DNA of 64,000 nt. Source: Piromyces finnis finn (taxonomy: Eukaryota > Fungi > Neocallimastigomycota). A program made the position numbers and the translations under genes. Below the pieces are notes generated by a model. The model did not search any database. It was given only the letters and a program-made list of their open reading frames with translations, and had not been told where the DNA came from. The stretch lies in NCBI GenBank assembly GCA_002104945.1, contig MCFH01000042.1:419119-483118 (forward strand), written 5' to 3'. Positions 55,978 to 63,757 of this stretch are shown one piece after another. The first letter of the stretch is position 1, and every line of letters begins with the position of its first letter.

Positions 55978-58900
55978 ATGATTAAGGAAACTTTACGTTT
56001 TGATGAACGTGTAGTAGTCATTACCGGTGCCGGTGGTGGTAAATATGAAATTTATTATATTATTATTAATTTTGGAAGGGAGAGAAAGGAAATATAAGAT
56101 ATTTATATTTATTTAAATATTTTCATTTATATTGTAATTCCTTTTTTTTTTAATGTAACATTCATTTTCACTTGAAATTCAATTAAAAAAAAAAAAAAGG
56201 TTTTGGTCGAGCCCATGCCTTTTTATTCGCTTCTCGAGGCGCAACTCTTGTTTTAAATGATAATGCTATTATTTCAAATAATAATGGTCAACCAAAATAT
56301 TTAGTTGATGATGTTGTTAATGAAATTACTAAAGCTGGTTTCCATGCCATTGCTAACTATGAACCAATTGAAAACGGAGATAAGATCATCGAAGCTGCTA
56401 TGAACGCTTTCGGAAGAATTGATATTTTAATTAATAATGGTAGGACCAATACTATATTTTTTTTTTTTTTTGGAAAAAAAAACATTTATATCCATAAGAC
56501 TATCCTTTTTTATATCTATTAATCATTAAACAATTTATTCTTTTTATTGTTAATATTATTATTTATTATTGTGTCAATAATAATTTCGCTCAAACAAATT
56601 CTCGATAACTATTTAAAAAAAAATGCCAATATCCTTAACAACACAAACAACACCACCACAAAAAAATAATTTTTAAAAAAAAAACTTTTTTTAAATTATA
56701 GCTGGGTAATTTTCATTTTCTAAAATTTAAATATAGAATGCAATACTCTATATGACTATTCAATAAGTTATAGAGTAAAAAAAAAAATATTGACATTTAT
56801 TAAAATCTTTAATTTAAATATTCAATCTATATAAATAATTAGTGTTACTTGCAATAAGCCATTCAATGAAATGTCAGATAAGGACTGGGAATATGTACAA
56901 AGTGTCAATCTTCGTAAGTTTAATACTCTAAATAATTATTAAATTTAAAATCATCTTTTATACAAATATCAGATAATGTGTATATATTAATAAATAAATA
57001 ATTTAAATAATAAAAGATGGTGCCTACAAGGTTACCAAGGCTGTCTGGCCAATTATGCAAAGACAAAGATATGGTAGAATCATTAATATTGTTTCTGCTG
57101 CTGGTCTTTACGGTAGTTACGGTCAAGCTAATTATTCTTCAGGTATAATATAAATTTTATTAATATTGTAGTAATTGAAGAATAAAAATTTATGGCAATT
57201 TATTATACTCTACCTTTTAACATTATTTCTAAAAATACTCTATATTTTACAAATTTAATTTATAATGAAATGGATGAATTCGTTCATTCAACACTTTAAA
57301 TAACCTCATCCTGACCAAAAAATTAATGAATATAAATATGACCTTTTCAAAAAATAATCAACGAAATCAACCATTCTAAACATGTTGCCCCTAATAAATA
57401 ATCAATGAAATCCGTAAATATGAAAATGCTGTTCCTAATTATCAATGAAATACATAAATATGAATACGTTGTTTCAAATAAAATCATTGAATATCAATCA
57501 AATTTTATCGTTTATAGCCAAGATGGCTTTACACGGATTCACTTTATCTTTAGCTAGAGAAGGTTACAGATACAACATTTATTGTAATTGTGTTTCACCA
57601 TACGTTGCCTTAAATTATGATGCTTCTATTAAAGATAAATCTGTTCAAGTTGTCAAGCCAGAATTCTTATCCCCACTTTTAGTTTTCCTTACCCATGAAA
57701 ATACCAGAGAAAATGGTTCTCACTTTGAAGCTGGTGCTGGTTATATTGGTAAGTTAAGATGGGAAAGATCTCAAGGATCTGTATTTAAATCCGGTGAAAC
57801 CTTTACCCCAGGTGCTGTTGCTGCCAAATGGAATGAAATTAACGATTTCAATCAAAGTGACTATCCAACTTCTGCTTTAGATAACGATTGGTTCAGACTC
57901 TTAGAAAAGTCTGTTGCTATGCCATCTAACAATGAATCCATTGGTGAATTATCCTTCAAGGGTAGAGTTGTTATTGTTACTGGTGCTGGTGGTGGTATGT
58001 TTTTTTTTTTTTTTAATCCTTTTGATATAATAAATAGTAAAAAAAAAAAAAGTCAAATAGTACTAATTTTTTAAAATTATATTTATATTTTTTTTCTATA
58101 ATAAATAAAATAAAAAAAAATCATCAATACCATTATTTACATTATTCAACTCCATGATCCGTCATATGTCAATAACACAATAACTCTGTTTATATTATTC
58201 AATTCCATAATACATCGCCTACTAATAACACAACTCTGTTTATATTATTCAATTCCATAATACATCGCCTACCAATAACACAACTCTGTTTATATTATTC
58301 AACTCTATAATACATCATATACCAATAACACAACTCTGTTTATATTACTCAATTCCATAATACATGCTAATAATTCAAAAATAATTATACTCTTTCATGA
58401 TAATGAAAAACACATTAATAACTCAAAAATAATTATTCTATAATGAACAATATGTCAATAATACAATAATAATTATATTCACATAATGATATGATTCAAT
58501 TCCATGATATATAATATTACAATAACTATATTTATATAATGATATGATTCAATTCTATGATATATAATATTACAATAACTATATTTATATAATGATATGA
58601 TTCAATTCTATGATATATAATATTACAATAACTATATTTATATAATGATATGATTCAATTCTATGATATATAATATTACAATAACTATATTTATATAATG
58701 ATATGATTCAATTCCATGATATATAATCTATCAATATATTATATATAATATATGAAATTTATTATTTTATTATTATTATTAAATGAAATCCCAACCAACC
58801 CATGAATATATTCAAATTGTAATAATATATTATTAAGGTCTTGGTCGTGCTTACGCCAAGCACTTTGCTAAGTTAGGAGCTTCTGTTGTTGTTAACGATT

Positions 58901-61289
58901 TAGGTGTCCTTTTACGTGGTAGAGGTGCCAATACTCAAGTTGCTGATAGTGTCGTTGAAGAAATTAAGAGTATGGGAGGTATTGCTGTTCCAAGTTATGA
59001 CTCTGTTGAAGAAGGTGAAAAGATTGTTGAAACTGCCATCAAAAACTTTGGTCGTGTTGATGTTATCATTAACAACGCTGGTATTTTAAGAGATAGATCC
59101 TTTGCTAGAATGACCGATACTGATTGGATGATGACCTACAAGGTTCACTTAAAGGGTTGTTACAAGGTTACTAAAGCTGCTTGGCCATACATGGTTAAAC
59201 AAAAGTACGGTAGAATTATTAATATTACATCTGCTGCCGGTCTTTTCGGTAACTTTGGTCAATCTAACTATGCTGCTGCTAAGGCTGGTGTTATTGGTCT
59301 CACTAATACTTTAGCCTTAGAAGGTAAGGAACACAATATTACTGTTAATAGTATTGCTCCAAATGCTGGTACTAGAATGACAGCTACTATTATGCCACAA
59401 GAAATGGTTGAATTACTCAAGCCAGAATACACAGCCCCATTAATTAGTTTCCTTACCCATGAATCATGTACAGCTACTGGCGGTATCTATGAAGTTGGTA
59501 GTTGCTGGATCGCTCGTATCCGTTGGCAACGTAGTGGTGGTGCTTCTTTCGCCATCAACAAATTATTATATCCAGAAAGCATTGCTACCAGATGGCGTGA
59601 TATTATCAACTTTGAAGATGGTCGTGATACCTATCCAACTACTATTGAAGAATCTACTGCTCAAATGCAAGTAAACTTAAAGAATGTTGATAATTCAGCA
59701 GAAAACGAAGAAGAAAAGCAAGTTGCTAAGCAAGAACAAAAGCAAGAAGGCAATGAAGAAAACAACATTTCAAAAATTGATACTGAAGCCCTCAAAAAGA
59801 TTGTATTTAACAAGGAAAAGTTTTCTTACAGTGAAAGAGATGTTATCTTATATTCCCTTGGTGTTGGTATTACCAAAAAGGAACTCTCTTACGTTTATGA
59901 AAATTCTCCAGACTTCAAGGTTCTTCCAACCTTCTCCACCGTTCCAGCCTTAGACTACTTCTCCAAGATGAACCTCTCTAACATATTACCAATCTTTACT
60001 CCAGAAACCTTCATACAAACCAAACACTTTATGGAATTAAAAAAGATTTTCGAACCAAAAGATGTTGTTGTTTCAAAGGGTAAAATTGTTGACATAATAA
60101 AAACAAAACTAGGTGCTGTTTTAGTTACTGCTATATCCACTTATGATCAAGATGATAATGTCATTTGTTATAATGAATTCCACCATCTTCTTCGTCACGT
60201 TGATCACTATGATAACTGTCCAGAAAAGGCCTTAGAATCAAAGATGAATAACACTGTCGTTATTCCAAAGAGAAAGCCAGACGCTATTGTTAAGGAACGT
60301 ACTTCTGAAGATCAAGCCATTCTTTACCGTTTATCTGGTGAAAAGAACCCATTACACGTTGATCCAGCTATGGCTTCCATTGCTGGTTACAATTCACCAG
60401 TTTTACAAAACCTTTGTGTTTTAGCCATCAGTACTCTTCATGTCATTCAAACCTTCTGTTATAGTGATGTTGCTAGTGTTAAGTCTATTCAAGCTGACTT
60501 TGTTTCTCATGTCTTCCCAGGTGAAACTTTACAAACTAATATGTGGCAAGAAGGTACCAAGATCTTATTTACCGTCAAGGCTTTAGAAAGAGATATTGTT
60601 GTTATTTCTAATGCTGCTATCCAACTTCAAGGTCAGGCTATTGCTGGTTTAGCCATGCCAGATCCAGAAAAGAGTTGGTTAACCGTTGAAGGTTTCAAGG
60701 CCTCTAAGATTTTCGAAAAACTTAAGGCTACCTTAGAAGCCACTTCAGGTCCAGAAAGAAGACTCAAAACTAAACAAATAAATGCTGTCTTCCAATTTGA
60801 CGTACGAAATGATAAACGCGAAAGTCAAACATGGTATATAGATTATAAGAATGGTCAAGGTGATATAGGTATTGGTAAACCAACTCACTCAAAACCAGAT
60901 TTAATAATAGCTGCCAGAGATGAAGTTATAATAGATTTAGCTTCAAGGAAAATTACCGGTCAAAAGGCATACATGCAAAGTAAAATTAAGGTAAGCCTAT
61001 TTTTTTTTTTTTTTTTAATCTTTTTATTATTATTATTATTATTATTTCAATCTATTCCTATGTCTTTCTCTGCGCATACACCTACTTACATTTCTATTTT
61101 ATCTCTATTTTATGCATTCCAAATATATTCTATACATTTCATATATTTTATTCATTATATACATTATATTTTTTTATCCATTCCTACTATACATTACATT
61201 TTAATTTATAGTTAAAGGGTAACCATGCTTTAGCCATGAAATTAGATAGTATTCTTGCAGTAACAAAACCAATCATTGCAAAACTTTAA
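55978..61289 (+). CDS. FOX2: Multifunctional enzyme type 2 (FOX2/HSD17B4): SDR-A + SDR-B + hydratase-2 fold + SCP2, C-terminal PTS1
   Basis: Two TGAGG|GLG Rossmann motifs, NNAG motifs, YxxxK (NYSSAK, NYAAAK), [30 protein letters not shown], an SCP2 domain ([26 protein letters not shown]|LKGN..AMKL), and last exon ending ...KPIIAKL* (TAA 61287-61289). Confidence 0.95.
58171..58365. repeat. Intronic 50-bp minisatellite, about 3.8 copies
   Basis: (c/t)aactctgtttatatta recurs at 58181, 58231, 58281 and 58331. Confidence 0.92.
58484..58727. repeat. Intronic 53-bp minisatellite, about 4.6 copies
   Basis: atgattcaatt recurs at 58491, 58544, 58597, 58650 and 58703. Confidence 0.92.
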
Positions 61290-62446: not shown

Positions 62447-63757
62447 TTAATTATTTTCGGTAGAAACATCTTGAACAATAAAGTTATAATATTTCATGGA
62501 AATGTCTTTAAAATTTTGGAAGAATTTTTCTGGACAGTTGTATGGACCGTTTACAGAGAAATAAAAGGTTTCTTTATTATGGAATCCATATAAATTTAAA
62601 AAGTAAAATTGATCATAAACAGCAATTTGATTAGAAAATTGAAGATTATCCATACCAACACCAACTAAACCTAAATGAGAGGTAAAGGTATAATTTGTTT
62701 TACAAGGATCAAGGAATTTGCTATAATTATTCATTGCTTGACCTTGTTCATCGGTTAAATTGGCCGCACTATAACCGGAAATACAGGCTTCTTGAGTATG
62801 ATAGGCTTCTTGGAATTTTTTGGAACAAACTAAAATATTTTCTAATGGATCATCTATTTTATCTACCATTGGATAAAGACTACCAACATGATAATAAAAT
62901 AGAGCCCTTTTAAATAATTCAGTGGCATAGGGATACTTACGATTATCCACTGGACACATCAAAGCAATTGGAATATCATCATATTTTCCTTGATGATATA
63001 CTCTAAGGGCTTCATTTTGAATAGCCATAACAATGGCTTGGGCCGTAACACCATGCTTTCTACAAAAAGTGGAAATTGGTGCATAAGGAACTTCCCATTG
63101 AGGTTGAATAACATGAGATGGTCGAGTAATTGGTGGATTTAATTCAGCATAAATAGCTTTAGAATTAATTTCAGGATCTTGGAAACCTTGACTTGTAATT
63201 TCTTCGGTATACCAACATTTTTTACCAAAGTCAAACACGGCTGGTTGATTACGAAAACTATCTAAACGTTCGGTGAATGGTTCATTCAAGGCTAAACAAT
63301 AGAAAATATCTAAAACATCAAAAGCTCCTCTACCATCAATAATACCATGACATATTCTTACCCTAATTTTTGTTTTTTCTTGTTCGGTTTCACCAATTTC
63401 TACACGCCAAAGAGGAGCTTTGTCAATTTCATACCATTCGGAAAGTTCATCTTCCAACGGGATTTTACCTTTAAGCATTTTTACTAAATTATCAAATTGA
63501 ATTTCGGAATCTTCAGCATACTGGAAATAATGTTGACCTTCTTTGGTAATAATTTTTAAACGTAATGTTGGAAATTCTTTTAAAAGAGTATAATATTTTT
63601 GACGTATATTGTCTATGGCTTGAATTGGTGTAACTTTTGACTTTGGTACAGTACCACTAACAGTAATCCAAGCTGCTAATGGATTATTTTCACTTGAATC
63701 AAGAATACGTAATAATTTTCCACTATCTTCAAAACTAATTTTTTCCATTTTTTCCAT
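62447..63757 (-). CDS. CoA-dependent acyltransferase (condensation / alcohol acetyltransferase-like fold), intronless, 436 aa
   Basis: Catalytic HxxxDG in RICHGIIDGRG, preceded by FPTLRLKI and APLWRV, with ALMCPVDNRK and FTSHLG in the C-terminal lobe. Confidence 0.82.
   Translation of the reverse strand: MEKMEKISFEDSGKLLRILDSSENNPLAAWITVSGTVPKSKVTPIQAIDNIRQKYYTLLKEFPTLRLKIITKEGQHYFQYAEDSEIQFDNLVKMLKGKIPLEDELSEWYEIDKAPLWRVEIGETEQEKTKIRVRICHGIIDGRGAFDVLDIFYCLALNEPFTERLDSFRNQPAVFDFGKKCWYTEEITSQGFQDPEINSKAIYAELNPPITRPSHVIQPQWEVPYAPISTFCRKHGVTAQAIVMAIQNEALRVYHQGKYDDIPIALMCPVDNRKYPYATELFKRALFYYHVGSLYPMVDKIDDPLENILVCSKKFQEAYHTQEACISGYSAANLTDEQGQAMNNYSKFLDPCKTNYTFTSHLGLVGVGMDNLQFSNQIAVYDQFYFLNLYGFHNKETFYFSVNGPYNCPEKFFQNFKDISMKYYNFIVQDVSTENN

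Follow-up and report, generated by a model that had tools for sequence, protein, structure and literature searches.

Clade-wide remodeling of the hydratase-2 domain in a Fox2-type protein of the anaerobic fungus Piromyces finnis

Results

The hydratase-2 motifs are altered in the P. finnis protein

The window analyzed here, a stretch of 64,000 nucleotides (nt) from the anaerobic gut fungus Piromyces finnis (contig MCFH01000042.1), carries a gene for an MFE-2/Fox2-type protein in which two SDR dehydrogenase domains (SDR-A and SDR-B) are followed by a double hot-dog hydratase-2 domain and SCP2. The hydratase-2 domain is altered at positions that are invariant elsewhere, and the replacement residues are largely shared across the Neocallimastigomycota. 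The favored interpretation of these data, to which a probability of about 0.5 is given, is that this is a selected, remodeled hot-dog domain that may no longer be a canonical hydratase 2 and would instead serve a binding or architectural role for the dehydrogenase. The features on which the argument turns are listed below, where ‘clade’ means the Neocallimastigomycota and ‘outgroup’ means hydratase-2 domains from elsewhere.

59821-60195, + strand: hydratase-2 N-terminal (non-catalytic) hot-dog half (Pfam)
60013-60027, + strand: motif 1, IQTKH (ATA CAA ACC AAA CAC) instead of LHG(E/Q)Q
60100-60108, + strand: KTK instead of a near-invariant DKG loop (outgroup 98/98/94%; K-(T/S)-K in the clade)
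60196-60207, + strand: H-V-D-H instead of the glycine-rich G-x-G-G bridge joining the hot-dog halves (outgroup Gly 99/95/90%; H-x-D-x in the clade, with His and Asp fixed)
60265-60609, + strand: MaoC (catalytic) hot-dog half (Pfam)
60337-60357, + strand: hydratase-2 motif core G-E-K-N-P-L-H, with Glu (GAA, 60340-60342) at the catalytic Asp position and the catalytic His kept (60355-60357)
60403-60426, + strand: start of the central hot-dog helix, L-Q-N-L-C-V-L-A; LQNLC (60403-60417) has Gln for His and Asn for the oxyanion-hole Gly, and Ala replaces another invariant Gly (60424-60426)
60496-60498, + strand: Asp instead of a 96%-conserved Arg, a charge reversal (Asp/Glu clade-wide)

The correspondence of the motifs was established by phmmer alignment to the solved hydratase-2 structures from human (1S9C), Drosophila (3OML), Arabidopsis (7MKU) and Candida (1PN2). 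The hydratase domain shares 31-34% identity with MFE-2 relatives of known structure, and IQTKH was found opposite LHGEQ (LHGQQ in the plant structure 7MKU), G-E-K-N-P-L-H opposite G-D-x-N-P-L-H, and V-L-Q-N-L-C opposite I-L-H-G-L-C. A preliminary description of this DNA, made from the sequence alone, had pointed to altered stretches at 60013-60027, 60340-60342 and 60403-60417; its bases and coordinates proved exact, and the alignment with the human and Candida structures placed all three opposite canonical motifs. The Glu in the LHGEQ that it gave as canonical is not essential; this residue is Gln in 35 of 225 outgroup domains, including the Arabidopsis ECH2 structure 7MKU.

Hydratase 2 relies on Asp and His for the positioning and activation of water, while the oxyanion hole is provided by the backbone amide of a Gly at the N terminus of the central helix (PMC11321319; PMC2698920). 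In P. finnis, the motif G-D-x-N-P-[LIV]-H is broken by Glu in place of Asp, with N-P-L-H retained, and the helix-start Gly preceded by His has given way to Gln-Asn (Gln-Asn/Ser clade-wide).

The substitutions are rare outside the Neocallimastigomycota

Two outgroup samples were used. The first contained 225 non-Neocallimastigomycota hydratase-2 domains, obtained from two word-indexed protein searches and aligned so that columns could be tallied, and the second added 142 further representatives with mutual identity of at most 50%, giving 367 domains together. In the first sample the catalytic Asp, the catalytic His, and both the His and the Gly of the helix-start His-Gly pair were each present in 225/225 domains; in the N-half motif, His was present in 224/225 and Gly in 217/225, with 182 Glu and 35 Gln at the Glu position. 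The second sample held the helix-start Gly in 142/142, the catalytic Asp in 140/142 (replaced by Glu in none) and the His of the His-Gly pair in 139/142. Taken together, the oxyanion-hole Gly was found in 367/367 domains, the preceding His was replaced in three of the 367, and a change of the catalytic Asp to Glu was seen in 0/367. The motif substitutions are far beyond chance expectation. In an exhaustive search of 1.84 billion cluster representatives with phmmer, the entire clade was represented by a single sequence, and the best match after it came from Spizellomyces at 46% identity.

The sole other domain found with Gln at the position of the helix-start His belongs to a 303-amino-acid protein (P0315), in which the catalytic Asp is also gone (K-A-P-N-N-I-H). 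This protein looks like an independently degenerated hydratase-2 homologue.

Two of the changes are clade-wide and the third is recurrent

Relatives within the clade were collected from Neocallimastix californiae, N. lanati and N. ‘constans’ (two paralogs each), Anaeromyces robustus and Piromyces sp. E2. Contigs supplied further lineages: P0006/L002-L003 and P0007/L005 are separate, and L004 is of the N. californiae type. Contigs L002-L005 are intron-less, indicating that they are spliced transcripts. Gln-Asn or Gln-Ser was present at the helix start in all eight clade lineages or paralogs and in the proteins of the five named species, and every clade member carried x-(T/I)-K-H in the N half (variants IQTKH, MHTKH and IEIKH). 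The catalytic His was invariant across the clade and its acidic partner was always Asp or Glu: the two Piromyces species and one Neocallimastix paralog have Glu, and the other five of the eight lineages or paralogs have Asp. On the tree, Asp is ancestral and the change to Glu (GAT to GAA) arose twice independently. The three altered motifs therefore resolve into two clade-wide changes and one recurrent, lineage-specific change, so that the proposed check for substitutions common to the Neocallimastigomycota was borne out at the helix start and in the N half but not for Asp-to-Glu.

The two Neocallimastix paralogs, which differ in having Asp or Glu as the catalytic acid, both end in AKL, and one N. 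californiae copy carries the public name ‘Fox2 protein’. The same tripeptide closes 17/17 full C termini of the clade; PIIAKL ends 15/16 clade proteins, the 16th (P0247) being a fragment short of the C terminus, and the endings of P0006 and L005 read IIAKL and PIFAKL. Protein searches at 394-1255 and 160-509 amino acids, which unnamed or other-sized proteins could escape, returned no canonical hydratase-2 paralog from these fungi.

The hydratase domain is folded, expressed and constrained

The ratio of nonsynonymous to synonymous substitution (dN/dS) was estimated domain by domain with the Nei-Gojobori method in two comparisons of the window, one with N. californiae genomic DNA (L001) and one with the P0006 mRNA (L002), as follows.

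MaoC half: 0.060 against N. californiae, 0.084 against the P0006 mRNA
Hydratase N half: 0.122 against N. californiae, 0.133 against the P0006 mRNA
SDR-B: 0.068 against N. californiae, 0.072 against the P0006 mRNA
SDR-A: 0.047 against N. californiae, 0.088 against the P0006 mRNA
SCP2: 0.169 against N. californiae, 0.146 against the P0006 mRNA

The MaoC half gave values as low as those of the canonical SDR-B, and the low dN/dS in both hydratase halves indicates that the domain is selected and not decaying. An AlphaFold2 model of the hydratase piece, built from a 65-sequence alignment, had a mean predicted local distance difference test score (pLDDT) of 90 and a predicted template modeling score (pTM) of 0.89, and its central helix spanned residues 210-225 of the 293-amino-acid piece, starting at the Asn that replaces Gly. 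Foldseek matched the model to 1S9C with an expect value (E) of 1.5e-33 and TM-scores of 0.87/0.90, which argues for a double hot-dog fold with an overhanging segment. These results describe a domain that folds, is expressed and is under constraint. Within the clade, conservation of the protein peaks outside both halves, in the 45 residues that separate the MaoC half from the Pfam SCP2 match (60610-60744; 98% identity, dN/dS ~0.01).

The extent of remodeling was explored by taking outgroup columns conserved at 90% or more and scoring each for change in the clade, with SDR-A compared with other two-SDR fungal Fox2 proteins. In the hydratase domain 19/68 conserved columns were changed, and most of these substitutions are radical (Gly to His/Asp/Thr/Asn, Arg to Asp, Asp to Lys). 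The corresponding counts were 9/100 for SDR-B, all conservative (91/100 kept), and 28/105 for SDR-A, many of them radical (77/105 kept). The ratio of the mean clade-outgroup tree distance to the mean distance among outgroups was 2.45 for the hydratase domain, 2.78 for SDR-A and 1.64 for SDR-B. Together, the column counts and distance ratios identify SDR-B as the canonical part of the protein and show that SDR-A and the hot-dog domain are both remodeled. The preliminary view that both dehydrogenases look intact is thus correct for the motifs and for SDR-B, but SDR-A has changed as much as the hydratase domain. Examples in SDR-A are the replacement of ILRD by VTCN after NNAG and the loss of several Gly residues, and this domain may have acquired new substrate or cofactor behavior. 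Purifying selection on SDR-A is still strong, as its dN/dS values show. Most replacement residues in the hydratase domain are identical in all eight clade sequences, indicating a new selected state and not drift.

Gene structure and surroundings

The MFE-2/Fox2 gene occupies 55978-61289 on the + strand and consists of eight exons, in a model rebuilt by eye and script. Its exons and remaining domain are listed below.

55978-56038, + strand: exon 1, with the start codon and the TGAGGG loop of SDR-A, predicted to bind nicotinamide adenine dinucleotide (NAD); phase-1 donor GTAAAT
56200-56439, + strand: exon 2, SDR-A as far as ...ILINN (Pfam adh_short)
56722-56725, + strand: exon 3, a 4-nt micro-exon, CTGG (tatag/CTGG/gtaatt), which restores the frame and completes NN-AG
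56843-56913, + strand: exon 4, SDR-A
57017-57142, + strand: exon 5, with the SDR-A catalytic Ser and the beginning of YSSAK (adh_short, E 1.3e-8)
57518-57994, + strand: exon 6, the end of SDR-A, an inter-domain part and the TGAGGG loop of SDR-B
58838-60990, + strand: exon 7, large (717 codons from 58840), with SDR-B, a linker, the hydratase-2 N domain, the MaoC domain and most of SCP2
60745-60990, + strand: first part of the SCP2 domain (Pfam)
61212-61289, + strand: exon 8, the last, with the end of SCP2, the C-terminal A-K-L (61278-61286) resembling a type 1 peroxisomal targeting signal (PTS1), and the stop codon

Exon 1 matches residues 1-21 of the N. californiae protein P0002. The micro-exon is needed because the exon frames on either side (56200-56439 and 56843-56913) do not join without 56722-56725, and the NNAG motif of SDR-A appears only once these four nucleotides are spliced in. 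The micro-exon and its flanks are identical in N. californiae genomic DNA (L001, 3885-3888), mRNA contig L002 reads AAT AAT GCT GGT across the site, and the public P. finnis protein model, which reads NNAGVTCN, already includes it. Pfam searches of exon 7 gave adh_short (5e-41), MFE-2_hydrat-2_N (9e-29), MaoC_dehydratas (3e-23) and SCP2 (2e-12), and the translation of exon 7 occurs without a mismatch in P. finnis ORX45061.1 (1069 amino acids, ‘hypothetical protein’). Sequence searches used single exons and public proteins rather than the joined spliced protein. As first described, the reading frame is open and both SDR domains retain TGxGxG, NNAG and YxxxK; read from the sequence, TGxxxGxG, NNAG, Ser and YxxxK are all present in each.

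A tandem-repeat scan from 58110 detected two arrays, at 58136-58365 and 58468-58755, within the 843-nt intron preceding exon 7; their units are 50 nt (4.5 copies) and 53 nt (5.5 copies), with 87-94% match. Downstream, a convergent open reading frame of 436 amino acids (62447-63757, - strand) contains C-H-G-I-I-D-G-R-G, which we take to recall the HxxxDG of acyl-CoA-dependent acyltransferases (CoA, coenzyme A). This reading frame had no match in Pfam, NCBIfam or PDB sequences.

Discussion

Comparison with known systems

The P. finnis protein resembles peroxisomal MFE-2 (human HSD17B4, Candida tropicalis/yeast Fox2 and Drosophila MFE-2) in containing the same families in the same order, namely SDR, hydratase-2 N, MaoC, SCP2 and a candidate PTS1. 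This order was seen exon by exon with Pfam and again in the full-length relatives P0002, P0006 and P0245, and the presence of two SDR domains is a feature shared with fungal Fox2. Unlike the human, Candida, yeast and Drosophila proteins, however, that of P. finnis has Glu for the catalytic Asp, Gln-Asn for the helix-start His-Gly and QTKH for HGEQ, has changed 19/68 conserved hydratase and 28/105 conserved SDR-A columns, and belongs to a strict anaerobe. Arabidopsis ECH2 (7MKU) and the MaoC protein of Phytophthora capsici (3KH8), each a monofunctional hydratase 2, share the double hot-dog fold and the hydratase-2 motif segment. ECH2 illustrates that Gln is tolerated at the Glu of HGEQ, and MaoC mutants report on the effect of altering Asp, His and Gly. 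Both of these proteins, in contrast to that of P. finnis, keep the Asp, the His-Gly pair and the glycine-rich loops, and neither carries fused SDR domains. In non-catalytic MaoC partners, such as ChsH2 of M. tuberculosis and the N half of eukaryotic hydratase 2, a hot-dog domain is used for substrate binding and pairing instead of catalysis (PMC11321319); the P. finnis domain, it is proposed here, may have taken on such a role.

What the substitutions may mean for catalysis

In P. capsici MaoC, itself a phmmer match, the D194N, H199Q and G217A variants have activities of 2.6, 1.7 and 17.4 U/mg, with unchanged circular dichroism spectra; the wild type is ~60 U/mg, as derived from a value of 91.2 U/mg given as 1.5 times wild type (PMC3823801). 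G217A thus retains ~29% activity, indicating that a side chain at the Gly position harms activity and does not abolish it. The preliminary description had called the Asp/His dyad and the Gly required, which for the Gly does not strictly hold. No literature values were found for Asp-to-Glu or for replacement of the His preceding the Gly. The comparative evidence weighs most: since Asp-to-Glu occurred twice in the clade and in 0/367 domains elsewhere, the geometric constraint of the canonical reaction appears no longer to apply at the catalytic position. The changes are real, clade-wide and at positions invariant elsewhere, which makes a canonical hydratase 2 unlikely; the constant catalytic His and acidic partner, together with the very low dN/dS, mean that residual or altered catalysis has to be reckoned with. 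The earlier interpretation is supported in part, and its wording, a pseudo-enzyme or one with changed chemistry, is in keeping with these data.

In the scheme favored here, this gene specifies the only MFE-2/Fox2-type protein of P. finnis (~1069 amino acids), in which a diverged SDR-A and a canonical SDR-B precede the double hot-dog hydratase-2 domain and SCP2, and AKL would serve Pex5-type import. The surroundings of the hot-dog active site were rebuilt on the Neocallimastigomycota stem. The His-Gly pair at the helix N terminus, where the backbone NH of the Gly polarizes the thioester, changed to Gln-Asn/Ser, the pseudo-symmetric His-Gly-Glu-Gln of the N half changed to Gln-Thr-Lys-His, and substitutions also reached several glycine-rich loops and one Arg, the new residues afterwards being frozen by purifying selection. 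Efficient canonical (R)-enoyl-CoA hydratase 2 function would have been lost, which would be sensible for an anaerobe unable to run the O2-dependent acyl-CoA oxidase step. The domain would have been retained as an acyl-CoA-binding tunnel and dimer core for SDR-B (a putative 3R-hydroxyacyl-CoA/3-ketoacyl-CoA oxidoreductase), possibly with weak residual catalysis. A lost or weakened hydratase activity, a function in scaffolding or binding, and a location in peroxisomes are all predictions from sequence.

Several observations weigh against this scheme. The catalytic His is invariant, the acid is always Asp/Glu and the entire Y-R-L-S-G-x-x-N-P-L-H-x-D-P segment is kept in the clade, whereas the dyad is gone from ChsH2 and other known MaoC partners without catalytic function (PMC11321319). 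As the oxyanion hole is formed by a backbone amide, a side chain there need not destroy it, and the residual activity of G217A (PMC3823801) points the same way, as does the natural Gln at the HGEQ Glu in the solved plant ECH2 structure 7MKU. Finally, a working enzyme would be expected to have just such a dN/dS, one no higher than in an active SDR domain.

Alternative explanations

Much of this would also suit an (R)-hydratase/dehydratase that still works with a non-canonical thioester-polarizing site, an alternative that is possible if on balance doubtful. Such an enzyme could act on feruloyl- or p-coumaroyl-CoA from plant cell walls with no need of an oxygen-dependent oxidase, and a changed range of substrates would then account for the remodeled pocket. 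Hydroxycinnamic CoA esters are 2-enoyl-CoAs already. In Aspergillus niger, FoxA/MFE-2 participates in the peroxisomal CoA-dependent shortening of hydroxycinnamic acids (PMC8140964), and feruloyl and p-coumaroyl esterases are made by anaerobic fungi, according to references given in PMC9108465; an oxygen-free hydroxycinnamic shortening route for MFE-2 would need an active hydratase. The constant His and acid with their conserved motif segment, the dN/dS of 0.06-0.08 in the MaoC half, replacement residues that are fixed and not drifting, and the ~29% activity of the homologous G217A variant (PMC3823801) are all consistent with activity. It should be noted, however, that the Gly was replaced in 0/367 other domains and that toggling between Asp and Glu, seen here and nowhere else, argues that the usual geometry is gone. 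Changes of this kind are not reported as needed by A. niger FoxA, and neither a CoA ligase nor a thiolase that could act as partner was identified, no search of the whole genome for such partners having been made.

A distinctly less probable alternative is a switch of chemistry, for example to an acyl-CoA thioesterase, in which the gained Gln, Asn/Ser and Thr, beside Glu/Asp and His, would direct water at the thioester and not at the double bond. Hot-dog thioesterases, such as TesB and FlK, use Asp/Glu with Gln/Asn/Thr/Ser. Polar residues have been gained and then fixed at exactly the two helix-start positions facing the thioester, and the acidic residue may be either Asp or Glu; but Pfam and Foldseek returned only hydratase-2 and MaoC relatives, with no 4HBT/TesB-type similarity, and hydrolysis is without positive evidence. 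The combination Glu/Asp, His, Gln, Asn/Ser and Thr was seen in no other hydratase-2 domain sampled. That the hot-dog domain has been re-purposed through this rebuilt site for an oxygen-independent job in a peroxisome-like organelle, whether aryl-propenoyl-CoA hydration (ferulate/coumarate shortening without an oxidase) or acyl-CoA hydrolysis, would be a speculative and rather unlikely outcome. By far the least probable is an artefact or decay, in the form of assembly errors or a dying beta-oxidation relic. Loss of beta-oxidation is expected in strict anaerobes, but this explanation was rejected on the shared residues, open frame, low dN/dS and duplicate copies. The same residues recur in the separately assembled genomes of five named species and among the intron-less transcript contigs L002-L005, which, with the exact match to ORX45061.1, excludes the assembly error that the preliminary description had named as its refutation. 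The frame is open over eight exons, including the conserved 4-nt micro-exon, dN/dS is 0.05-0.17 in every domain and two copies are kept in Neocallimastix. In addition, a fraction of 0.55-0.61 of sampled words was present in four runs, with exons accounting for 0.58 of the stretch.

Peroxisomal context and significance

The presence of peroxisomes in gut fungi is uncertain, although transcripts for import machinery exist (PMC5168858), and a peroxisome is not among the three compartments of the N. lanati metabolic model (PMC8561657). Beyond that remark on uncertainty, no literature account was found of the variant, nor any of peroxisomes or Fox2 in the Neocallimastigomycota. The anaerobic peroxisomes of Archamoebae (Mastigamoeba, Pelomyxa and Entamoeba) offer a comparison, as they have peroxisome-type import without catalase or beta-oxidation and hold an NAD-dependent dehydrogenase that lacks pathway neighbors and is thought to balance organelle redox (PMC8629394). 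That dehydrogenase is a possible model, by analogy, for the SDR domains of the P. finnis protein; unlike the latter, it is a myo-inositol dehydrogenase from another lineage, in which no MFE-2 has been reported.

An MFE-2 that bears a predicted PTS1, is strongly selected, has been duplicated in Neocallimastix and is rebuilt at its hydratase site would provide a concrete marker protein for a gut-fungus peroxisome. The clade is also a natural experiment that may reveal which hydratase-2 residues an enzyme really cannot do without. A domain that turned over aryl-CoA esters or worked as a thioesterase would extend the plant-biomass metabolism of anaerobic gut fungi by a new reaction.

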